Position numbers and translations under genes: made by a program
Shown here: positions 1,607-64,000 of the stretch, one piece after another
Layout: each line of letters starts with the position of its first letter
How positions within the stretch are numbered: the first letter of the stretch is position 1
Sequence record: MN871451.1
DNA: 64,000 nt
Direction: 5' to 3' (one strand)
Notes under the pieces: generated by a model
Seen by the model: the letters and a program-made list of their open reading frames with translations, nothing else
What the model was told of the DNA's origin: nothing
The model's database searches: none

Positions 1607-4285
1607 ATGGATAAGTCTAGTTTAAAAATTACTGAATTACCGGCGTTGTCGGTAGCCTCTGAGAATGGGTTTATTCCCATTGCCCAAGTTAAAGAAGAAA
1701 ACGACACGTATAAAACAACACTCCGTGCGTTACGTGAAAGTATCATGTTTGAGAACGCCTACTCGAGTACTGCGGCGGGTGTTTCGGCAACGGTTCCTGG
1801 CGATGTGTTCTTTGTTTACACTGACGATACTAAAGAGCATGTTCAAGGCTGGGTTAACAGTGCCGGTGGCGCCACCCCGTTATTGAATGCTAATAGTGAA
1901 CAAATCACTTACGGTACTTACGCGCTGTTGAATAAAGCTCTGAAGAATAAAGGGGCGATTGTACAGTGGGTTTATAATGGCGGGTTAAGTAACGGCGGGG
2001 AGCAAACCTTCACGGTTCCTTTAGCGGGGAATGTCGCAGTACAGGAAGTGTACGTCGATGGTTTGCGTCAGTTTAAAGACGTAGGTTTTGAATTAGTTGC
2101 TGGCGATATGTTGAGCTTTAAACTCGCTACACCAGTAAAAGAAAATCAAACCGTAGTAGCGATCTGTTTTGGTAGCGATGACATTGAGAAAGTCAACGAA
2201 GCGTTGCTCAGTCTATTTAGCGGGCCGACAGGTGCTGCAAATATCGGAATGGCAGCAGGCGGCACCGTAGAGGCCGCCATAGGCGCGCGGGTAGCTACTG
2301 CTGATTTAAGTAGCGTCTATGGAGCAGGGCTGGTCGGTACAGGGAATTACGCTGATCTTCGCAACTATACGGGTTATGCAAGCACGTTGTCTCTTTACGG
2401 TTACAGCACCGCCGGTGATGGTGGGGAAGGGATTTTCGATCGACAAAGCGTAGCTGGTAGTAAAACAGATGATGACTGCGTTCATCTTGTTGATAAATTA
2501 GGCAGACTTTGGAAACGTCGAATCAATGGGAACGTAGTGAAGCTCGCCTGGGCAGGCGTTAAGAGTTACGACCAAACCACCGCACCCCAAGATACCGCAT
2601 TTAAAAATGCATTGAAAGCAGCCGGACAACTCTCCTCTAACGGTTACCCGCAATCGATTATTACCGGGTTAGATAAAGGCGTGGTCTACCTTGCTCAGCG
2701 CCATTATATTCGCTGTGGAACATTCCCTGAATCTCTGTCGTGGATTCTTCCAACTAATTCCGGCGATCGTTTCGGTATTACGGGGCGTTATGCGTTAGAT
2801 CAAGGGGCGGGTTGGTTTGTGGTGCAAGCGAACCGTCCGCTGTTCGATATTGAGATTGACAACACCTCGCTGACATTCCAAGTCAATAATTACACCACTG
2901 CACAGATTGCTGGCTTGGTGGACACTAACTACGCGTTACGACTGGAAAGTATGGTTAACGCCCCGGATATTAAGATATCGGCAGGTGCTTACGCAGGAAC
3001 CGTACTTTACTCCTTAGGGAAGTCTAATTATACCGATGTAACAGCGAAGTGGCCAGATCTTACCGTCGTCCTACCGTCCATTCAGAATCTTGGTACATTA
3101 AGGATGAATAACAAAACAGTGGGTCGCGGGTTCTATCTTCGAAACACTGGTTCAGGCTTAGGTAAAGTTGAATACCTTTGGGAGCAGAATAATTCCCAAG
3201 CTTCCGTTCTGAAAGAAATGTACGATGTAGGACTAGAACATTACGAAGACTTTGTCCCACCGCTGCTGGCGACAGGTGGATTGATTATTGATACTTGCGG
3301 AACAGTAACGATAGGAAGTCTGTTAGTAGGTTCAGGCGGCGGTCCTCACGTCAGAATTTGGGATACTCCAGCGATCACTATCAACAAGATCTTTGGTGTC
3401 CAAGGCGGCCCGACTCTTGCCCAAACCCTCCCCGGCGCGTACTGTATTGAAATCTGTAACTCCCGTGTTTCAATCGGCCTTGTTAATGCGTATTATCCTG
3501 GCGAGTTTATTCGCATGGGCTACAATGCTTACGTTGGCATTGCCGATATTACGGGCTGGTATATGTCAAGAGTGGTCTACGTCACTAACGATACGACCAA
3601 GTTACAATATACCGGACAACGCATTGGTCAACCTAATGATACTGGTATTGTCACAATTTCGAAAGGGATCTTCTACAATCTCGATTACTACGCTGGAGGT
3701 TACGCAGCGCAACCTGTGTTCTACGTAGACGCAACTGTTCTTTACGGGAAAATGACGCTCGATAATATCGAATTCTATAATACCCATTCTGGGTGGACTA
3801 ACCTCACCGAAGATCAGATGTACATCGTCCGTGTAGACAGTCCTAATCCCAATTTCTTCTTTAGTACTCGGAACTGTAAATGGGACGATAATAATTTTAA
3901 TTACGTCATTTACCTTAAGCTACAAAGTCAACTGGCGTATTTCCAGAGCGCACAAACAAGCTACTCACGTATTCGATATGGGGACGGGACACAATCATCT
4001 TTTGGAATGCGGGACGCTACCCATGTTGATTTGACGACAACCGCACTACCATTAACAGGCGTTGACTACGTCTATAATTATCGTCGCGCGGGTAAGTACC
4101 ACGGTGATTTGACTGTCCCTTCTGGTGGTACATGCGTTATCAAAGTGAACGACCAAATATTGTACAATTATACAGCCGCGGGTACTTACCCGTTGAACTT
4201 GGTGCTGTATTACCAAGAAAGGGTCAACATTACGATCACCGGCGCAGTCACGCTAACGAACTCGACGTGGCGTTATACGGTATAA
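1607..4285 (+). CDS. Tailspike / depolymerase with a T4 gp10-like (XD3-type) docking module
   Basis: 892 aa. aa ~118-190 (WVYNGGLSNGGEQTFTV...VYVDGLRQFKDVGF...LATPVKENQTVVAI) resemble the XD3 module of CBA120 TSP4 / G7C gp66. Next come a typical tailspike N-domain (YSTAGDGGEGIF...DDDCVHLVDKLGRLWKR), a QDTAFKNALKAA beta-helix cap and a beta-helix body. Confidence 0.85.
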   Translation: MDKSSLKITELPALSVASENGFIPIAQVKEENDTYKTTLRALRESIMFENAYSSTAAGVSATVPGDVFFVYTDDTKEHVQGWVNSAGGATPLLNANSEQITYGTYALLNKALKNKGAIVQWVYNGGLSNGGEQTFTVPLAGNVAVQEVYVDGLRQFKDVGFELVAGDMLSFKLATPVKENQTVVAICFGSDDIEKVNEALLSLFSGPTGAANIGMAAGGTVEAAIGARVATADLSSVYGAGLVGTGNYADLRNYTGYASTLSLYGYSTAGDGGEGIFDRQSVAGSKTDDDCVHLVDKLGRLWKRRINGNVVKLAWAGVKSYDQTTAPQDTAFKNALKAAGQLSSNGYPQSIITGLDKGVVYLAQRHYIRCGTFPESLSWILPTNSGDRFGITGRYALDQGAGWFVVQANRPLFDIEIDNTSLTFQVNNYTTAQIAGLVDTNYALRLESMVNAPDIKISAGAYAGTVLYSLGKSNYTDVTAKWPDLTVVLPSIQNLGTLRMNNKTVGRGFYLRNTGSGLGKVEYLWEQNNSQASVLKEMYDVGLEHYEDFVPPLLATGGLIIDTCGTVTIGSLLVGSGGGPHVRIWDTPAITINKIFGVQGGPTLAQTLPGAYCIEICNSRVSIGLVNAYYPGEFIRMGYNAYVGIADITGWYMSRVVYVTNDTTKLQYTGQRIGQPNDTGIVTISKGIFYNLDYYAGGYAAQPVFYVDATVLYGKMTLDNIEFYNTHSGWTNLTEDQMYIVRVDSPNPNFFFSTRNCKWDDNNFNYVIYLKLQSQLAYFQSAQTSYSRIRYGDGTQSSFGMRDATHVDLTTTALPLTGVDYVYNYRRAGKYHGDLTVPSGGTCVIKVNDQILYNYTAAGTYPLNLVLYYQERVNITITGAVTLTNSTWRYTV

Positions 4286-6164: not shown

Positions 6165-7892
6165 ATGAACTATTATTACATTGATCCTACCGTATCAGTG
6201 AACGGTACGGGGACAAAAGACTCACCATTTAAAACGTTTTCTGCATTGATTGCACAAGGTTTCAGTCACCCTTGTACTATTGCACTAAAAGCAGGGACAA
6301 CTATTTATGAGAACGTTAATTTTGGCTTAACCTCTTTGTACAACACAACGGGGACCATGTCTTATATTACAAGTTATGGGACTGGACCAAAACCAAAATG
6401 GATTAACACAGACTATTTTAAAGCTGCCACTGCGCTCGATGGGTATAGCTATCGTGCAATGCATTTGACCGCACGTAAGGTACAAAGCGTTACCGTCAGC
6501 GGAATAGAGTTTTATGCCCGAAACAATCTTGTTTCGGTCGATAATAACAGTAGCTGTTTTATTTGGTTTGAATTGCCACCGGTAACTGTGGAAACTGATG
6601 TCGACGTATGGATTGATAATTGTAAATTTATTAGCGATCCGATTGGCAGAAGCGGAAATCATAAAGACTATGATTCCGCCGTCAATATACGTTTAGATGG
6701 TGCCGCCACAAATAGGGCGAATGTTTTTGGTGTCAGAAATTCTTCATTTTTCAATGTAGCGAGATCCATTAACATCGTGGGGAACCATTGGAAAGCAGAT
6801 GATATTACTGACAACTCTAAAGGGACGTATTATTCTCGCGGGGTCAAAGTAGAGAATATTGAGATGACAGGAATCTCAAAAGGAGGCTGTCAGTTTGCTG
6901 GCGTGGAGTCTTTAAACTCCGCCTACGTTGTGGACAAATATCAGTCAGTCATGCGGAATATTACGTATTCAAAATACCGATGGGATAACGCGTTAGAGAA
7001 CACTGAAACGCTATATGCCGATGCGGGGTTTTGGACATGGCGTTGTAATCGAATCATGATTGAAAACATTTTCGGCGGTGGTATGCACCCTTCGGTTACC
7101 GATAATGAAATCATTGATTTTGATTACTGTACGTGGGATTCGGTGGCAAGAAATATCATTGGCTTCAACAATGGCGCCTCGATTCTATTTATGGGCAATT
7201 CTTCTACAAGTGTACAAGGTGGAGCACGAGCGGCGTACGCCCCCTATTCCGGCACTTATACACAGGCGCAATGGTTCTATGATCGAAGGAATGGCCAAGG
7301 TAACAATGTTGTTGAGTTTTCGTTCTTTTTCAATGACGGTATTCAACGATTACCATATCCTTCTTCCGGTTACGACTATTGCACCAACATTCGTTCTGGT
7401 AACATTAATTACAACAATGTGGTCAGGAACTGCGTCTTTATTGACACCGTTTCTCGAACCAGTAAATACCTCGCTAGTAATAATAATTTCCCGTTGTTAC
7501 AGGGTGAAGTTCCTCGATTAGTTATTCAGGACTCGGTCTATTACGCCAGATATAATGACGGTTTAAATATTCTTAAACCTATAACAGACACGGTCAATTA
7601 CAGTAAAGCAGCCACTGTTTTAACTAACGTTGTTGCTTTTTCACAAGTATGGTCAGCAGCTGACATTACAGCCGCCGCTGCCGCCGTGCAATTAGCAGGA
7701 ACGTGCACCAATGTTAATATTACCGATCCTAAAATCGGTTATATTCCATCTCAACCACCAGTGTCCGTTGCAAGTGCAAGAAAGATTAAAACTATGCCAG
7801 GTACTGTTTTGAAAGGGTCGGGATCTAATACTACCACCACCGATATCGATGGGAATTTTATTAATGATATTTGGTGGATGAAAATTACTTAA
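6165..7892 (+). CDS. Right-handed beta-helix glycan depolymerase (pectate lyase-like)
   Basis: Starts YYYIDPTVSVNGTGTKDSPFKT, a typical lyase/DUF1565-like start. Beta-helix rungs follow (IDNCKF, VRNSSF, VENIEM, MIENIF, VRNCVF). No obvious anchor domain. Confidence 0.75.
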   Translation: MNYYYIDPTVSVNGTGTKDSPFKTFSALIAQGFSHPCTIALKAGTTIYENVNFGLTSLYNTTGTMSYITSYGTGPKPKWINTDYFKAATALDGYSYRAMHLTARKVQSVTVSGIEFYARNNLVSVDNNSSCFIWFELPPVTVETDVDVWIDNCKFISDPIGRSGNHKDYDSAVNIRLDGAATNRANVFGVRNSSFFNVARSINIVGNHWKADDITDNSKGTYYSRGVKVENIEMTGISKGGCQFAGVESLNSAYVVDKYQSVMRNITYSKYRWDNALENTETLYADAGFWTWRCNRIMIENIFGGGMHPSVTDNEIIDFDYCTWDSVARNIIGFNNGASILFMGNSSTSVQGGARAAYAPYSGTYTQAQWFYDRRNGQGNNVVEFSFFFNDGIQRLPYPSSGYDYCTNIRSGNINYNNVVRNCVFIDTVSRTSKYLASNNNFPLLQGEVPRLVIQDSVYYARYNDGLNILKPITDTVNYSKAATVLTNVVAFSQVWSAADITAAAAAVQLAGTCTNVNITDPKIGYIPSQPPVSVASARKIKTMPGTVLKGSGSNTTTTDIDGNFINDIWWMKIT

Positions 7893-7911
7893 TCTCGATT
7901 CTTTTTCACAT

Positions 7912-7929
7912 CTATATTACAAGTGTGAA
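7912..7929 (+). promoter_or_regulatory. Phage early promoter (CTATATTAC-N5-TGAA)
   Basis: Contains the phiKZ early consensus TATATTAC; one of eight copies of the motif; intergenic. Confidence 0.7.
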
Positions 7930-8050
7930 GAGGAAATAAGACACCCTCCGATTACTCCTATTTAACCGTTTCTCACAGTGCCGGTTAATAACGAGACATT
8001 CATTTTAATTTATAAGTTCAGGGACTTCGGTCCCTGTCTTATTTCACCTT
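7925..8050 (+). ncRNA. Candidate structured small RNA or regulatory leader
   Basis: Lies between the promoter and a UUCG hairpin/U-tract; no ATG-started ORF. Perfect 11-bp complement between 7933-7943 (GAAATAAGACA) and 8035-8045 (TGTCTTATTTC). Internal stems at 7962-7968/7982-7988 and 8021-8025/8030-8034. Confidence 0.55.
8019..8045 (+). terminator. Intrinsic terminator-like hairpin
   Basis: CAGGGAC-ttcg-GTCCCTG followed by TCTTATTT. Confidence 0.65.
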
Positions 8051-8062
8051 TAAGGGTCAACT

Positions 8063-8308
8063 ATGTTTACTCCCCGTATAGCGCTCTTAGAGAGCCTACA
8101 AGAGACAATATCATTCGTCCCTGACGAGAACCTAGCTTTATTAAACGAAGCCGCACTGTTGCTCTCAGAGCTTCTCCCGCCGTGGGACAATAAAGCCGCT
8201 TACATCACCCCCGTAGAAAACGCACTCACTGGCGCCCATCAATTCGGTAAAATCGTAGAAGATCATTTCTACCCTGCCGAAGACATCCTGAAAAACAATA
8301 TAGACTAG
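8063..8308 (+). CDS. Hypothetical protein
   Basis: 81 aa; AAGGG SD-like motif upstream; ends at a terminator. Confidence 0.65.
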   Translation: MFTPRIALLESLQETISFVPDENLALLNEAALLLSELLPPWDNKAAYITPVENALTGAHQFGKIVEDHFYPAEDILKNNID

Positions 8309-8347
8309 AAAGGAAAGGGGACTAACCCCTTTCCTTTCTGTGTTCTT
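8307..8347. terminator. Bidirectional terminator between convergent genes
   Basis: 14-bp stem AGAAAGGAAAGGGG-actaa-CCCCTTTCCTTTCT between 8063..8308(+) and 8348..8560(-). Confidence 0.75.
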
Positions 8348-8560
8348 TTAAGCGTCGATCGTGTCTACTACGTGCAGGAAACCGTCGGTGTCTTTGGCCA
8401 GAAAACGACCGATTGCTGGTTTATGTTTCTGGACAAACCAATCCAGAAATGTTTCGTTTGCCCCGTCTTCGAAAATGAGCGTGACCGCATTCGGGTCAAT
8501 TTTACTGCGGGTAATCTCAACAATCTTTTGCGCTGTGGTGGGAATGATTGAATAGTTCAT
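8348..8560 (-). CDS. Hypothetical protein
   Basis: 70 aa; fills the gap between the terminator and a divergent gene; one of only two credible minus-strand genes. Confidence 0.6.
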   Translation of the reverse strand: MNYSIIPTTAQKIVEITRSKIDPNAVTLIFEDGANETFLDWFVQKHKPAIGRFLAKDTDGFLHVVDTIDA

Positions 8561-8681
8561 CGCTACTTATGCCTTGTTCATTTTAGGTGTTAACATAGCA
8601 ATATACCGCCTGTTTTTCTTGACTACCCCAAATCTATTTTTAAGTAAACTTTCTATGATAACGACCAATAAGGAAGACAAG

Positions 8682-9011
8682 ATGCAGGTTATTACAAGAG
8701 AAACGATTCTCAATGTGTTAATGAAAGAATGGCAAGAAAAGGTGGGTCGAGTACTCTTTAAACTCCGCGACACTTACCCTGGTAACAACTGCGATTTACT
8801 GGGACGACAACTCATTGTTGCACTCAATCTGAAAACCGGCACATCCGGAATGTACAACGGTGTTCTTTACAACGTGGTTGGAAAACTCACCAACGACACA
8901 ACTCTGACGCTTTACTTTATACAACCCCATGCGGCGACTGAGCTGATCCCTGTCGATCTGACTGTCGTTGACGCACTCTTTATTAAACGCACCCAGGAGG
9001 ACTGGAAATGA
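8682..9011 (+). CDS. Hypothetical protein
   Basis: Probable start ATG 8682 after AAGGAAGA, within ORF 8574..9011. Confidence 0.7.
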   Translation: MQVITRETILNVLMKEWQEKVGRVLFKLRDTYPGNNCDLLGRQLIVALNLKTGTSGMYNGVLYNVVGKLTNDTTLTLYFIQPHAATELIPVDLTVVDALFIKRTQEDWK

Positions 9012-9415
9012 CAAATCGCACTATCCTGAAATTCAGTACCGACGAAGAGACTTTCGAAGTCATCGACAACGACGGCCGTCCGGTTGACCCACTCGACCTT
9101 TCTGAAACATTAGAAAGTGTCAACGAACAGTTAGGGTTTGAACTCTATAAAACGGATGTCAACGATAAGACCGCTGACGGCGAAGAACTCACGGTGGTTG
9201 CCGTTACTGAGAATGACTCAGGGGCGGTGACCGAAACGCTGATCGAAGAAGGGAACAACGTCTTTGCTGCTACACTGGCTGAGAAAGGCTGGTTCATGGA
9301 AGAAGCTGACAACAAGATCATCGATGAACTTGACGACAGCGAGGAAGAGGATTGGGACGACTACGACGATGACGATTACCAATCTGTACCGGAAGACTTC
9401 GAAGACGATGAATAA
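9008..9415 (+). CDS. Highly acidic protein
   Basis: 135 aa, about one third D/E; tail LDDSEEEDWDDYDDDDYQSVPEDFEDDE; ATGA overlap with the upstream gene. Confidence 0.8.
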   Translation: MTNRTILKFSTDEETFEVIDNDGRPVDPLDLSETLESVNEQLGFELYKTDVNDKTADGEELTVVAVTENDSGAVTETLIEEGNNVFAATLAEKGWFMEEADNKIIDELDDSEEEDWDDYDDDDYQSVPEDFEDDE

Positions 9416-19832: not shown

Positions 19833-21044
19833 ATGTTTGACTTAGGCGTAGTAATCGGTAAATTCGCACCCCTTACGTTGGGGCACATCAACTTAATCAC
19901 AGAGGCTGCTGTGCAGTCTAAGCATGTCCTCGTCATTCTTTCCCACGACCAACGTTGGCTGGATAAACAATCGCCACGAGACCAAAAGGTACTCAATTTC
20001 AAGAATCGTCTGCGCTGGCTGCAACAGACTTACGCGGATACAGAGCACGTCACGATCGATTTCATTGATGAGGCTTCTGTACCGGAATACCCGAACGGCT
20101 GGAAAGAATACGCTGCTCTGCTCGGCGCTAAGATTTTCAACGAGGCAGGTAGACTGGCAGCTAATCACAGTCAGGCGCAGAGCATTGCTATTTTCAGTAG
20201 CGAGCTGGATTACGATGAAAAATACAAAACGCACCTCGGTTTTGTAGAACACGTTATCGTTGACAGTAACCGTACCCGCGTCCCCATCTCCGCCACGATG
20301 ATCCGTGAAAACCTTTACGACCATTGGGAATATCTCCCGAGCATTGTCCGTAAAGATTATTGTTTGCGGGTGGTCGTATTAGGCGTTGAGAGTTCTGGGA
20401 AAAGTTCCCTCGTCAAGAACCTCGCCAAACTCTACAATACCAGCTGGGTTGAAGAGTACGGCCGTACGTACTGTGAAACGGTCTTAGCGGGTTCGGAAGC
20501 GACTCTCCGTAGTTCTGACTACCCGTTGATTGCGTATCGTCACAAAGAGCTGGAGGAGGAAGCATTACGTACTTCTAATCGACTCTGTTTCATCGATACG
20601 AACGCCTTCATTACGGAATATTACCATCGGCTGTACGAGGGTAAACCTAACCCTATTGTTTCTGCTATCGCGGCTGAAGAGCATTACGATCTCGTGTTGA
20701 TTCTTTCGCCGGAAGTACCATGGGTCGATGATGGTCTGCGGCTGAATCCTGACCGCGAGAAAACAGAGAGTCTCTTCCAACAAATGCTTTGGGAATTTAA
20801 AAACCAAACACCATGGGGGCGCACTGTATTCATTAAAGGGGACTCTTACAAAGGTCGTTTAGATCAATCACGTGAAGCGGTTGATAACTTGTTATCCGGT
20901 AACGGCACTGCCGGCCAGAGCGCTCCAGAAATTCCAAATAAGTTCCCTCCTGCTGCCAGCGGTGGTAACTTTGATAAAGATTGGAGTATGGTAGAAAGCA
21001 TCGAGGCTGGTTCTCATCAGAACCCCGCTGATTGGGGTGGATGA
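19833..21044 (+). CDS. nadR: NadR-type bifunctional NMN adenylyltransferase / ribosylnicotinamide kinase (no HTH repressor domain)
   Basis: IGKFAPLTLGH ((H/T)xGH motif), ISATMIRENLYDHWEYLP, Walker A GVESSGKSS, EEYGRTY, FIDTN, WVDDGLR. Confidence 0.95.
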   Translation: MFDLGVVIGKFAPLTLGHINLITEAAVQSKHVLVILSHDQRWLDKQSPRDQKVLNFKNRLRWLQQTYADTEHVTIDFIDEASVPEYPNGWKEYAALLGAKIFNEAGRLAANHSQAQSIAIFSSELDYDEKYKTHLGFVEHVIVDSNRTRVPISATMIRENLYDHWEYLPSIVRKDYCLRVVVLGVESSGKSSLVKNLAKLYNTSWVEEYGRTYCETVLAGSEATLRSSDYPLIAYRHKELEEEALRTSNRLCFIDTNAFITEYYHRLYEGKPNPIVSAIAAEEHYDLVLILSPEVPWVDDGLRLNPDREKTESLFQQMLWEFKNQTPWGRTVFIKGDSYKGRLDQSREAVDNLLSGNGTAGQSAPEIPNKFPPAASGGNFDKDWSMVESIEAGSHQNPADWGG

Positions 21045-21048
21045 TTTC

Positions 21049-21192
21049 ATGACTCAACAACGGCGTACGCAACGCAAAATAAAGCGGATGTTAGGCGATA
21101 ACTATCGCTTTTACCACGCTGTATTTGGCGACAAACTTAATCTGAGATCCGCAAGTTACATCTCAACTTTTCTCGAAGGATTTAATAGATGA
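21049..21192 (+). CDS. Small basic protein, 47 aa (not in the ORF track)
   Basis: MTQQRRTQRKIKRMLGDNYRF...; fills the nadR-pnuC gap exactly; its stop overlaps the pnuC ATG (ATGA). Confidence 0.55.
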   Translation: MTQQRRTQRKIKRMLGDNYRFYHAVFGDKLNLRSASYISTFLEGFNR

Positions 21193-21878
21193 ACTCATTG
21201 GTAATGAAAACTTTCACTGACTTTGCGCACTGGAAGAAAGTCGAATACTTTTGGCTGATCGTAGCGTTAATCGTCGTCGGATTAGGGAGCTGGCAAGCCA
21301 GTCCGTTAGAATTCACGGCAGCGCTGACTAACGTCGTCTGCGTGATTCTGGTGGCGAAGGGTCGCGTCTCTAATTATTACTGGGGGACGATTGGCGTAAT
21401 TACCTACGGTATTGTTTCGTACAATACCGGCCTTTATGCCAATGCGGCGTTGAACGCTATTTACCTTCCCATGCAGTTTATCGGTATTTATTACTGGACG
21501 AAAGACCTGGGCAAAACTCCAGCCAAAGCTGACGTAGCGGTTAAAACGATCACTTTACGTGACGTGATAACTTATCTGGTTGTTGGGGTTATCTTCTGGT
21601 ATGGCCTGACCGAATACCTGAAAACTACGCAGGATCCGTTTCCTGCATTAGACGCGTTCTGCTTAGTCGCATCGCTCATCGCCATGTGGATGATGATCAA
21701 GCAGCAGCCAGAGCAATGGATTCTCTGGATCATTATCAACTGCGTCACGATTTATCTGTGGGTGATCCCGGCGCTTAATCAACCGGGTTCATGGGCGCAG
21801 GTGGCACAGTGGGCAGTATTCTTGATGAATGCTTTCTACGGCCTTTGGAAGTGGTATATCACCAAAACCAACAAATAA
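21189..21878 (+). CDS. pnuC: PnuC nicotinamide riboside transporter
   Basis: Multi-TM protein; NVVCVILVAKGRVSNYYWG, MQFIGIYYW, DPFPALDAF, EQWILWIIIN; adjacent to nadR. Confidence 0.93.
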   Translation: MNSLVMKTFTDFAHWKKVEYFWLIVALIVVGLGSWQASPLEFTAALTNVVCVILVAKGRVSNYYWGTIGVITYGIVSYNTGLYANAALNAIYLPMQFIGIYYWTKDLGKTPAKADVAVKTITLRDVITYLVVGVIFWYGLTEYLKTTQDPFPALDAFCLVASLIAMWMMIKQQPEQWILWIIINCVTIYLWVIPALNQPGSWAQVAQWAVFLMNAFYGLWKWYITKTNK

Positions 21879-30222: not shown

Positions 30223-30786
30223 TTGAACGATCCAATTAAGTTATCAAAAACACTGTGTTTCATTTTACGCCATCGGCCTCAGGCTTTGAAATTAACGCCT
30301 GATGAACTTGGCTATGTCAGACTCGACGACCTGATTGCAGCATTCTCTGAACAGAATAAGGTAGTTACGTTACAGGAAATCATGCACGTTGTAGAGACGG
30401 ACGATAAGAAACGATTTGGGTTATCCGATGATTTTTCTTCCATCCGTGCTGTACAAGGACATTCATTCCCAGTAAATGAAATGGCCTTCAATGAAGAGGT
30501 ACCGCCTGAGGTACTTTACCACGGCACTGCATCGGGGAATTTAGAGAGCATTTTTCAGGAAGGGTTAACGCCGGGGTCACGTCAGTTCGTTCATTTAACT
30601 GACCACATTGAGACAGCGCGTTTAGTGGGGTTACGGTACGCTAAGAAAGGGTCGCTCGTAGTCTTGAGTATTGACACCCAGAAACTTTTGGAACGCGGCT
30701 ACGTGTTCTACAAAGCGATTAACGGCGTGTGGTTAGTGAAACACGTCCCGGTAGGTTGTTTCAAAATAGAGGAAAAGAAAGAATGA
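30223..30786 (+). CDS. kptA: RNA 2'-phosphotransferase Tpt1/KptA
   Basis: LSKTLCFILRH, DDKKRF, IRAVQGHS, LYHGT, EGLTPGSRQFVHL, NGVWLVKHVP; the catalytic Arg-His-Arg-Arg tetrad appears present. Confidence 0.95.
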   Translation: MNDPIKLSKTLCFILRHRPQALKLTPDELGYVRLDDLIAAFSEQNKVVTLQEIMHVVETDDKKRFGLSDDFSSIRAVQGHSFPVNEMAFNEEVPPEVLYHGTASGNLESIFQEGLTPGSRQFVHLTDHIETARLVGLRYAKKGSLVVLSIDTQKLLERGYVFYKAINGVWLVKHVPVGCFKIEEKKE

Positions 30787-58577: not shown

Positions 58578-59303
58578 ATGATTCATTACGTTAACAATGA
58601 CATTACAGACGAAGAGCTCAACCGATTCATTCTCGATAAAGAGGGTAATTTGAAAACGGTAGTTTCATTACCGTATCGGATCTTAGTCCATAAGTTAAAA
58701 TTCCCTCTTCAGATGGCGATGGTACAGGAGAAGAAGATCAGCTTTACAGAAGCTGAAGCACTGCTCTTCCGCGATCTGAATAACCCGCCAGATTATCACG
58801 TTAATTTGCTCATTGATCTTCTGCAGAAAAATAAAAATCAGGTCTCCCTTTTCCGTAATACACCAGACGGCGTAAAGCAGTCGATTTTCACTGTTGGCTC
58901 GATTCTGTTCCTCGGTAATCTTTCACGTCAAGAAGTAGTATTATGCAATAACAGTAATGGTACACAACCTCCTGAAAAACCAAAGGAAAAACCGAAAATG
59001 GCAAAAGCACGCAAACCTTCTACGCCGGGCGAAATTCTTTTGAAAGAATACCTGGAACCGAAAGAAATTTCTCCGACTGATTTCGCTGCGCATATCGGTC
59101 TGGCGACGGCAACGCTGTCTCGTCTGATCAACGGCAAAACCAAACTGACGATCCGCACCGCGCACCGCCTGGCAAAGGCTACCAAAACCACCGTCGAATT
59201 CTGGGTTAATCTCCAGCAGGCGGTTGACCTCGCTGAAGCCAAAGCTGATAAAGAGCTGGCCGCCGAAGTGAAAGCGATCAAACTGCACCCGGCGTTTAAA
59301 TAA
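58578..59303 (+). CDS. Hypothetical N-terminal region fused in frame to a HigA-like HTH domain
   Basis: GAGGGA SD; no stop before the HigA-like part. Confidence 0.55.
   Translation: MIHYVNNDITDEELNRFILDKEGNLKTVVSLPYRILVHKLKFPLQMAMVQEKKISFTEAEALLFRDLNNPPDYHVNLLIDLLQKNKNQVSLFRNTPDGVKQSIFTVGSILFLGNLSRQEVVLCNNSNGTQPPEKPKEKPKMAKARKPSTPGEILLKEYLEPKEISPTDFAAHIGLATATLSRLINGKTKLTIRTAHRLAKATKTTVEFWVNLQQAVDLAEAKADKELAAEVKAIKLHPAFK
58998..59303 (+). CDS. higA: Orphan HigA-family (Xre HTH) antitoxin-like protein
   Basis: STPGEILLKEYLEP...FAAHIG....LSRLINGK..LT...A.RLA....TTVEFWVNLQ...DL; own AAGGA SD; abrupt shift to highly biased codons. Confidence 0.8.
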   Translation: MAKARKPSTPGEILLKEYLEPKEISPTDFAAHIGLATATLSRLINGKTKLTIRTAHRLAKATKTTVEFWVNLQQAVDLAEAKADKELAAEVKAIKLHPAFK

Positions 59304-61689: not shown

Positions 61690-61817
61690 GTAGTTGGCAC
61701 TCCAAACCGTGTGGATATAGCTTGTTTCTTGTCACAAGAAACGGGTTAATGCGAAGTCATCACCTCTATTATCACGCCAATCTAAATTATTTTGAACCCG
61801 CTATTAAGGAAATCAAC

Positions 61818-62357
61818 ATGTTATTTTCAATGATTGTCGCGCACGATCTCGATTACATTATCGGACAAGATGATAAACTTGCTTGGAAATCAAAAGAAGA
61901 CCTTTCATGGTTTGTAAGAAAAACCAAAAATAAAGCCATCGTCATGGGGTCTACTACGGCTAAGGGTATTGGCCGGGCTTTACCCGGACGAGCCCATTAT
62001 GTTCTGACCTCTGATCCCAGTCAGTTTGAAAACACCCCCGAACTCCTCGCGTATAGCTCATTTGAAGATATCGCTGTAGACGCCTCTAGAAAAGGCTACA
62101 ACGAGATTGTTATCTGCGGAGGGGTAAGTATCTACAAACAACTATTAGATCGGGTACAGAAGCTTTACGTGACGGAAATCCCTATTCGCTCCAAAGGGAA
62201 TGTTCCGCTCGACATTGATCTTATCCAAGAACTCAGTAAACTATTCTCTTATACTACCGTTCACCGTGGTTGGACCCTTGAGTCGCATGAATTCGGGGAA
62301 GACGAGGGATGTCGTTTCTCTACGTTCGTGAAAATACAGAATCCAATAACACGCTGA
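61818..62357 (+). CDS. folA: Dihydrofolate reductase
   Basis: MIVAHD...IIGQDDKLAW..KEDLSWF...T...IVMGSTT..IGRALPGR.HYVLT, ICGGVSIY; ATG 61818 after AAGGA. Confidence 0.92.
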   Translation: MLFSMIVAHDLDYIIGQDDKLAWKSKEDLSWFVRKTKNKAIVMGSTTAKGIGRALPGRAHYVLTSDPSQFENTPELLAYSSFEDIAVDASRKGYNEIVICGGVSIYKQLLDRVQKLYVTEIPIRSKGNVPLDIDLIQELSKLFSYTTVHRGWTLESHEFGEDEGCRFSTFVKIQNPITR

Positions 62358-62405
62358 TAATATTTATTTTGAAGATTAAGATTTAACACTTTCAAAGGGG
62401 TTACA

Positions 62406-63269
62406 ATGTTTAAAGTTACGTTTGATGACCAACCGGTCCTTTATGAAAATTTAACTTTCCCGGGTGGCGAGGAACATATCGCCATTAGTCGTCATGGTCT
62501 ACCGCCTCATGATATCGGTGTTGTTAAAATAGAAGGAAGTATCAAATCCTCCACCGAGGCAGTGCGTCTACTGTTACTGGTCGATGCCATTCGTCGTATT
62601 GGGAAATACACGGCGAAAACAGAACTCCATTTAGTTGTGCCTTATTTCCCGTACGCGCGACAAGACCGTGTCTGTAATGCAGGCGAATCGTTTTCACTCG
62701 GCGTTTTTGCTGAACTGTTCAACAGCCTGAAAGCAGACCGAGTGTTGATACACGATCCTCACTCTAACGTTACCCCGGCGCTGATAAAAAACCTCGTCGT
62801 CCTGGAACAGTCCAAAATTGTCTACAATTTATTGGCTAATTGGATTCGGGAAAATAACGTCGTGTTAGTTTCACCGGACGGCGGCGCGGCGAAGAAAACT
62901 GAAGAGTTGGCAAAACTACTCGGCGGGGTGCCTATCGTTTACGCAAACAAAAAGCGCGATACTAAAACCGGCAACATTCTCGACATTACGTTATTGGACA
63001 ATGACAATATCGAAGGTCGTAATTTGTTGGTTGTCGACGACATCTGCGATGGTGGGTGGACTTTCACTGAGCTGGCGAAAAAACTCAATACCCAAAACCC
63101 GAAATCGCTCAGTCTCTTCGTGACCCATGGAATTTTTTCCAAGGGCCTGGGTGAACTCTCTATCGCTTTTGATCAGATTTTCTCAACCAACGTTTGGTGG
63201 GAAAATATCACTGACGACGGGTTACCAACCCAATCTTATTTAACTGCTAAAGATGGACGTGTGAAATGA
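62406..63269 (+). CDS. Prs-like pyrophosphokinase; candidate ADPR-PP synthetase (Adps)
   Basis: FPGGE, PYFPYARQDR, DPHS, VSPDGGA, KKRD..TG, VVDDICDGGWTF, THGIFSKG; translationally coupled to the Nampt-like gene. Confidence 0.88.
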   Translation: MFKVTFDDQPVLYENLTFPGGEEHIAISRHGLPPHDIGVVKIEGSIKSSTEAVRLLLLVDAIRRIGKYTAKTELHLVVPYFPYARQDRVCNAGESFSLGVFAELFNSLKADRVLIHDPHSNVTPALIKNLVVLEQSKIVYNLLANWIRENNVVLVSPDGGAAKKTEELAKLLGGVPIVYANKKRDTKTGNILDITLLDNDNIEGRNLLVVDDICDGGWTFTELAKKLNTQNPKSLSLFVTHGIFSKGLGELSIAFDQIFSTNVWWENITDDGLPTQSYLTAKDGRVK

Positions 63270-64000
63270 CCAACCCTTTACTGAAAGACCCAAAGTTCTA
63301 TACTGAAGATCCGCTGGTTTTCCTGCTGTGCGACGCCTACAAAACGGGGCACATCAATCAACAACCTCTGGGCACTGACAGCTTCTTTGAAAACCTGACG
63401 GCGCGTAGTCATACGTACTTCAATACGCCTCTGGACTTCGACGGTTCGGTGTTCATGGGAATGCAGCGCCTGGTTCTGCGTTGGTTGGTGGGAAGTTTCG
63501 ATAACTTCTTTAAAGCGCCGTTCAACGAATCGGAGGCAGAATACCTTCAGTATATGGATGGTGTTCTGGGTAAAGGTGTGGTGAAATCCGCTCACCTGAA
63601 AGCACTTCACGAGCTGGGTTATCTCCCACTGGAAATCCGTGCGGTACCGGAAGGCTCACTCGTCCCTATTCGTGTTCCATTCCTGACGATTGAAAACACA
63701 GTGGATGGCTTCGGGTGGCTGACGGGTTATTTCGAAGACCTCTGGAGTAACGAACTCTGGAAGCCATGTGTGCTGGCAACGAAAGCGTTGCACTTCCGTC
63801 GAGTGTTAGAGCAGTACGCTAACGAAACGGGTGCGGCAAAAGCCTTTATCGACTACCAATCTCATAACTTCGCACTGCGCGGTATGTCGGGTATGTTCGA
63901 TGATGCCAACAGCTCAGTCGGTCAGCTGATCTACTTCAAAGGGAGCGATAGCTTCCCTTCGGTCTGGACAGCGAATCGCTTCTATAACCCAGAAGGCGAT
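63266..64000 (+). CDS. Nampt-like phosphoribosyltransferase; candidate Namat (3'-truncated by the window; not in the ORF track)
   Basis: ATG overlaps the prs-like TGA; open to the window end. CDAYKTGH, LHELGYLPLEIRAVPEGS.VP...P.LTIENT, HNFALRGMSG, FKGSDS. Confidence 0.9.
   Translation, partial: MTNPLLKDPKFYTEDPLVFLLCDAYKTGHINQQPLGTDSFFENLTARSHTYFNTPLDFDGSVFMGMQRLVLRWLVGSFDNFFKAPFNESEAEYLQYMDGVLGKGVVKSAHLKALHELGYLPLEIRAVPEGSLVPIRVPFLTIENTVDGFGWLTGYFEDLWSNELWKPCVLATKALHFRRVLEQYANETGAAKAFIDYQSHNFALRGMSGMFDDANSSVGQLIYFKGSDSFPSVWTANRFYNPEGD

Follow-up and report, generated by a model that had tools for sequence, protein, structure and literature searches.

Introduction

What does a phage enzyme with the fold of nicotinamide phosphoribosyltransferase (Nampt) make, and from which base, when the aspartate of its His-Asp-Phe (HDF) motif has been replaced by asparagine? 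The question is raised by a pair of genes at the end of a 64,000-nucleotide window (the whole stretch of DNA analysed here) of MN871451.1, the 302-kb record of phage KpYy_2_45, which was isolated on Klebsiella pneumoniae. In this pair a gene with the fold of phosphoribosyl pyrophosphate (PRPP) synthetase (Prs or PRPS) lies directly upstream of, and on the same strand as, a gene with the Nampt fold. A preliminary description, made from the letters of the window, had read the two as the Adps and Namat genes of the NAD+-restoring pathway NARP1 and had suggested that the asparagine may alter base specificity. We show here that sequence and fold support the NARP1 assignment, and that the asparagine, Asn201, does not occupy the position of the residue known to select nicotinamide. 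With a probability of roughly three in four, we consider the pair to be a functional NARP1 module that tolerates Asn201 as a compensated substitution in the second shell and recognizes nicotinamide as characterized Namats do.

NARP1 was defined by the operon of Bas63, where genes 79-80 encode Adps and Namat (Osterman et al., bioRxiv 10.1101/2024.02.11.579819). Judged by homology, the Adps of the window would pyrophosphorylate ADP-ribose (ADPR) with ATP to give ADPR pyrophosphate (ADPR-PP), which Namat would then join to nicotinamide (NAM) to form NAD+. The coenzyme would thus be regenerated from the two products of host NADase defence systems.

Results

An intact gene pair at the edge of the window

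A Prs-like gene carrying FPGGE and DDICDGG, coupled by an ATGA overlap to a Nampt-like gene, had been described from this locus, and the open reading frame (ORF), the frame and the overlap confirm it (coordinates are collected in Table 1). As had also been noticed, the second frame is absent from the ORF list because it runs past the end of the window, within which its 245 codons are open. In the full phage record the complete gene (L001, positions 7567-9348) is intact and encodes 593 amino acids, so that the truncation is an effect of the window edge only and the gene is not broken. Positions 61700-64000 of the window match MN871451.1 at 100% identity and twelve further records of ~300 kb, from Klebsiella phages of Siatvirus type, at 83-99%. 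The arrangement of a Prs-fold gene directly upstream of a Nampt-fold gene is repeated in the relatives L002, L006, L008 and L009.

The second gene matches Namat in sequence, fold and clamp signature

When the full gene was retrieved and aligned with characterized enzymes, a step that the preliminary description had proposed, its product proved closest to Namat. With HMMER the best match was the SpβL1 Namat (9W5X/9W5W, 2.5e-117), followed by NadV of Haemophilus ducreyi (HdNadV, 2.2e-87) and mammalian Nampt (~1e-38). An AlphaFold2 (AF2) model of the 99%-identical protein P0001, with a mean predicted local distance difference test (pLDDT) score of 93.7, has 9W5X as its top fold match (template modelling score 0.94), and the fold search orders the solved structures as HMMER does, with 9W5X first, then NadV, then Nampt. 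The entries 9KE8 and 9KEO in that search are the Haemophilus ducreyi NadV; a literature search for papers naming these two entries found none. The Namat of Bas63 (Escherichia phage JohannRWettstein; P0032) is likewise 593 amino acids long and 45% identical to the protein of the window.

Namats carry a clamp signature (SCH), GSXΦXΦXΦTRD, in which positions 3 and 7 are aromatic (PMC12774641). Residues 487-497 of the phage protein, encoded outside the window, read G-S-F-E-F-Q-Y-V-T-R-D and supply these aromatics as F489 and Y493; the Φ1 position of the signature, usually Thr or Ser, is occupied by Glu. At the two aromatic positions HdNadV has Q and R, and the Xanthomonas Nampt has A and K. A second element, the selectivity-clamp loop (SCL), supplies an extra adenine-stacking residue in Namat (PMC12774641). 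The SCL of the phage protein is like that of Bas63 in length, and Tyr51 is the residue that both BLASTP and MAFFT place, by alignment only, opposite the Bas63 loop Trp.

The core residues named for the SpβL1 enzyme are D13, Y15, F189, R192, D215, A242, H245, R306, D308, G360 and D361 (PMC12774641). The phage protein keeps the contacts D23, Y25, F202, R205, D228, A257, R344, D346, G457, D458 and A459, together with G487, S488, T495, R496, D497 and the catalytic His260. Exceptions are Ser190, which is replaced by Ala203 (Ala stands in this column in 69 of 266 aligned sequences), and the variable Arg40 of the SCL. Across the 266 sequences the contacts with a fixed equivalent, and likewise the catalytic His, vary little or not at all.

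The two enzymes thus share an identical catalytic core and an aromatic clamp, but the phage protein is ~100 residues longer than the 491-residue SpβL1 Namat, with an SCL longer by four residues that has no Arg at the Arg40 position, and it has Asn201 for Asp188, Ala203 for Ser190 and Ser232 for Ala219. Two insertions, both encoded outside the window, are present relative to SpβL1, at residues ~267-295 (L001 8365-8451) and ~358-424 (L001 8638-8838). Both are shared with the Bas63 Namat in place and length, and both are folded confidently into helices and strands by the model except at residues 371-390, where the mean pLDDT falls below 50 around 378-380. The comparison with Nampt and NadV (mammalian Nampt, HdNadV 9KE8 and the NARP2 NadV of phage KVP40) is different in kind: the fold and the core Asp, Tyr, Phe, Arg, Asp, His, Arg and Asp are the same, but identity in fold alignments is 23-32%, the aromatic clamp residues are missing and the genes are unpaired with an Adps-type gene.

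Some relatives in the Namat family (P0008, P0160, P0162, P0174, P0198 and others) reach 800-900 amino acids through an insert of ~300 amino acids inside the catalytic domain, which in P0008 begins after residue 264, just past the catalytic His. Pfam scans of these long relatives found no domain in the inserts, which may be intein-like or other mobile insertions.

The first gene is closer to Adps than to PRPP synthetase

Identity of the Prs-like protein is 38% to the Adps of Vibrio phage ICP1, an enzyme verified biochemically, and 34% to the Bas63 Adps; both comparison sequences were taken from phage records. Site residues reported for the ICP1 enzyme are Phe18, Arg87, His121, Asp161, the catalytic Lys185, Asp212/213 and the Cys215-Asp216 that opens the pyrophosphate (PP) loop (PMC13586617). 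The phage protein has F18, R85, H119, D158, K182 (the equivalent of Lys185), D211, D212, C214 and D215, which are invariant across six Adps-type proteins and include the loop D-D-I-C-D-G; in the aligned E. coli enzyme this loop reads D-D-M-I-D-T-G-G. Differences from ICP1 Adps are found at Phe92, which is Cys90 here (Bas63 is also without Phe at this site), and in the second half of the PP loop, G-A-A-S there and G-G-W-T here. Adps proteins have been described as short and devoid of the PRPS C-terminal region. With 287 amino acids against 316 for the E. coli enzyme chain 4S2U, the phage protein is about as short as ICP1 Adps and, judging from its length, would also be without the PRPS C-terminal helices.

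These observations bear on an alternative reading of the pair as ordinary salvage, in which a true PRPP synthetase and a Nampt would make nicotinamide mononucleotide (NMN), to be converted to NAD+ by a NadR-like enzyme of the phage along a NARP2-like route. The database labels are indeed Prs and Nampt, a NadR-like NMN adenylyltransferase/ribosylnicotinamide kinase is encoded in the same window, and the SpβL1 Namat keeps about half of the PRPP activity of human Nampt in vitro (PMC12774641). However, the Prs-like protein scores 153 bits (E 7e-40) against ICP1 Adps and 77 bits against the best solved PRPS, and it carries the Adps form of the loop. A search of the Protein Data Bank with it returned canonical PRPS enzymes only and no Adps structure. 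It passes the cut-off of the broad TIGR01251 subfamily (129 against 113) but lies well below those of all NCBIfam equivalogs for true PRPP synthetase, the best scores being 106 bits against 296 and 96 against 438. Moreover, the SpβL1 Adps yielded no product in an assay of PRPP-synthetase activity, the clamp signature of Namat is present in the partner, and the NadR-like gene adjoins a PnuC-like gene 41 kb away, with which it forms a NARP3-type pair of its own. We therefore regard ordinary salvage as unlikely; sequence, fold, clamp signature and Adps residues together uphold the earlier identification of the pair as NARP1.

The pair resembles the Bas63 operon in gene order and strand, in the insertions and SCL of Namat (Tyr51 here, Trp in Bas63) and in the invariant residues of Adps. 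It differs in that Bas63 has Asp in the HDF motif, 45 bases between the genes in place of the ATGA overlap, and an 87-kb genome compared with ~300 kb here.

Asn201 is not the equivalent of the nicotinamide selector

The motif QSHNFALRG was read correctly from the window: it occupies residues 198-206 and has Asn where the solved homologues compared here have Asp. The preliminary description equated this position with human Asp219, the selector of nicotinamide over nicotinic acid, and this is where it went wrong. In rat Nampt (2G95_A, native numbering) the motif is H191-D192-F193-G194-Y195-R196, and the sequence G217-T218-D219 ends 26 residues past Phe193. The identities so counted match the Phe193, Arg196 and Asp219 of the literature (PMC3665594), and it is Asp219 that has been credited with determining Nampt's substrate specificity (PMC7096376). 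In the SpβL1 Namat the motif is H187-D188-F189, while Asp215, in a G-T-D motif, hydrogen-bonds nicotinamide, and its replacement by alanine costs ~8-fold activity (PMC12774641). We mapped the SpβL1 residues by hand from HMMER alignments and checked the index of 9W5X against the paper's G360/D361/A362 and G390...D400.

HMMER aligns Asn201 with the HDF Asp of 9W5X/9W5W, HdNadV 9KE8, mouse and rat Nampt and the Xanthomonas Nampt. From the motif counts in 2G95_A and 9W5X it follows that Asn201 corresponds to D192/D188 and not to D219/D215. The selector lies 26-27 residues downstream of the HDF Asp; in the phage protein it is Asp228, which is intact. The proposal of an altered base specificity is therefore unsupported, as it depended on the wrong residue.

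The substitution is old, recurrent and covaries with position 232

The full protein was aligned with 265 relatives, gathered by a word-indexed search and by HMMER, run exhaustively over 1.84 billion representatives. Asp stands at the selector column in all 266 sequences. At the HDF column there are 237 D, 21 N, 7 C and 1 G, and parsimony on a neighbour-joining tree, with Asp at the root, gives at least nine losses of the Asp (to Asn in six cases, to Cys in two and to Gly in one). The group to which the Asn of the window belongs is monophyletic and comprises 14 sequences of 74-99% identity, each from a large phage contig; none of the 13 close relatives has another residue here, and the codon in L001, L002 and L006 is AAC. 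The Namat gene is under purifying selection: in comparison with a relative of 73% identity, its gene-wide ratio of nonsynonymous to synonymous substitution rates (dN/dS) is 0.08, with dS saturated. Three non-Asp lineages were examined for their neighbours, one Cys lineage, one independent Asn lineage and one represented by a distant member of the Asn clade, and in each an Adps gene is found just upstream. The Namat-like protein of ICP1 carries Asp at the HDF position.

Being fixed, recurrent, paired with Adps and found in a gene with low dN/dS, the substitution is old and maintained, and arises repeatedly in otherwise normal NARP1 pairs. In the preliminary description, a common Asn at this position in characterized Namats of unchanged specificity was to count against the specificity proposal. 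The relatives go part of the way to this, since Asn is fairly common among them (21 of the 266 sequences) and arose repeatedly.

Nor does the Asn appear to mark a degenerating, inactive Namat. Changes in the core can be harmful, given that mutations of the D215A type cut activity several-fold (PMC12774641). Yet 13 phage genomes carry the gene intact and at full length, the catalytic and ligand-contact residues are all conserved, and the mean pLDDT of the model is high. Decay is very improbable, and we rejected the pseudogene reading on the basis of the dN/dS value and the complete set of catalytic residues.

The scan for covariation with residue 201 covered all 593 columns and looked for conservation of 80% or more in sequences with Asp combined with departure in the independent non-Asp lineages. 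One strong partner was found, column 232, which is Ser232 in the phage protein and Ala219 in SpβL1. It is non-Ala in eight of nine independent non-Asp lineages, compared with 19% of Asp bearers (binomial P 1e-5; ~0.006 when corrected for 593 columns). In the AF2 model a short strand (199-201) ends at residue 201, and the helix 230-240, which starts two residues past Asp228, has residue 232 in its first turn. Phe202, on the same short strand, is the ring-stacking residue beside Asn201.

Discussion

Substitution of a residue next to the ring-stacking Phe poses the question of how the base pocket accommodates it. His200 and Phe202, on either side of residue 201, alternate along the strand, and for this reason the 201 side chain would point away from the bound ligand. 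It would pack against, or form a hydrogen bond with, the first turn of the helix after Asp228. A change at position 232, in that turn, would then compensate for the loss of the Asp, and Asn201 would presumably be neutral for function.

Several points weigh against this reading. We deduce how residue 201 is oriented, and that it contacts residue 232, from strand periodicity and covariation, and the stacking role given to Tyr51 of the SCL from alignment. The activity ascribed to this clade, and to Asn-bearing Namats in general, comes from homology. In addition, recurrent loss of a charge beside the stacking Phe, together with a coupled change near Asp228, could tune the pocket and so not be neutral.

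In its fuller form this last point would mean that loss of the charge at residue 201 and the change at 232 reshape the electrostatics of the pocket, so that nicotinate or another pyridine is also accepted; deamido-NAD would then be formed from ADPR-PP and completed by the NAD synthetase of the host. The adjacency of residue 201 to the stacking Phe, the at least nine independent losses of the Asp and a covariation four positions past the nicotinamide-binding Asp are all consistent with such an effect, and human Nampt can bind nicotinate (entries 6TA0, 6TA2), so that the selectivity of the fold is not absolute. On the other hand, the selector itself is invariant, and residue 188 of SpβL1 is not among the ligand contacts given for the Namat-NAM and Namat-NAD+ structures, nor is it mentioned anywhere else in the text of the paper (PMC12774641). 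A literature search on the role of Asp192 (D192) of Nampt found nothing relevant. Host chemistry demands no change, for the characterized Bas63 enzyme has the Asp and functions in E. coli, which is a related enterobacterial host. An altered base preference in the phage enzyme is thus doubtful. Equally speculative is the more general idea that the recurrent loss of the HDF Asp, coupled to the change in the first turn of the helix after Asp228, acts as a second-shell switch, tuning for example the charge of the base pocket, its pH dependence or its tolerance of nicotinate or other pyridines. If it were true, the bases from which some NARP1 modules restore NAD+, or form deamido-NAD, would be more varied. 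We continue to favour a functional NARP1 module with unchanged recognition of nicotinamide.

Genomic surroundings

The Adps-like gene follows a dihydrofolate reductase (DHFR) gene on the same strand after a gap of 48 bases; the latter is a neighbour and lies outside NARP1. A scan for promoters and terminators around the genes gave nothing above shuffled sequences except one hairpin beyond the window, at L001 9364-9393, which begins 16 bases past the Namat stop and has a perfect 13-bp stem, with a moderately T-rich tail behind it. The hairpin is probably the terminator that closes the DHFR-Adps-Namat block.

Table 1. Features of the window discussed in the text
Feature	Position	Strand	Evidence or remark
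NadR-like NMN adenylyltransferase/ribosylnicotinamide kinase	19833-21044	+	TIGR01526 3e-80; AAA_28
PnuC-like nicotinamide riboside transporter	21189-21878	+	PF04973 3e-43
KptA/Tpt1-family RNA 2'-phosphotransferase	30223-30786	+	PF01885 1.2e-42
DHFR gene	61818-62357	+	Pfam DHFR_1 5e-30; labelled DHFR in relative NC_061418.1
Adps-like gene, PRPP-synthetase fold, 287 amino acids, first of pair	62406-63269	+	ATG-started ORF; Pfam Pribosyltran, Pribosyltran_N; PHROG 619 6.5e-88
ATGA stop/start overlap of Adps-like and Namat-like genes	63266-63269	+	Read from the letters
Namat-like gene, 5' 735 bases (245 of 593 codons)	63266-64000	+	No stop before window end
SCL region, residues 45-57	63398-63436	+	BLASTP and MAFFT alignment to Bas63 Namat
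H200-N201-F202 motif	63863-63871	+	Asn201 = AAC 63866-63868; replaces SpβL1 D188/mammalian D192
Asp228 (GAT), equivalent of SpβL1 Asp215/mammalian Asp219, intact	63947-63949	+	HMMER alignments

About 41 kb upstream of the NARP1 pair, within the window, lie the NadR-like and PnuC-like genes. The NARP3 pathway, described in 2026, has the same gene content as this pair (PMC13464706). Judging from gene content, NARP1 and a NARP3-type pair appear to give a single phage two separate modules for restoring NAD+.

Between the two modules stands a gene of the KptA/Tpt1 family, which uses NAD+ as phosphate acceptor. In the relative NC_061418.1 the KptA/Tpt1 gene is near a gene labelled phosphohydrolase. 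At 58578-59303 (+) there is an ORF of 241 amino acids with a C-terminal helix-turn-helix (HTH), the counterpart of which in a relative is labelled 'plasmid antitoxin with HTH domain'.

On L006, a metagenomic contig of 246 kb from a jumbo phage, the Namat is 73% identical to that of the window, but the adjacent Adps (3126-4001) is only 39% identical, as distant from the Adps of the window as the ICP1 enzyme is. Either the Adps partner was exchanged on this contig, or the rate of evolution is far higher in Adps than in Namat. A gene with a NADAR domain (PF08719) is present on the same contig at 8685-9200, ~3 kb downstream of the NARP1 pair.

Significance

NARP1 is a recently described counter-defence of phages, to which a jumbo-phage clade of Klebsiella phages is added here. 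The change of nicotinamide specificity that had been proposed for the pair is corrected, as it came from a mis-numbered residue, the real selector Asp being invariant. The recurrent and covarying substitution of the HDF Asp is nevertheless a small point of interest for the enzymology of the Nampt fold.

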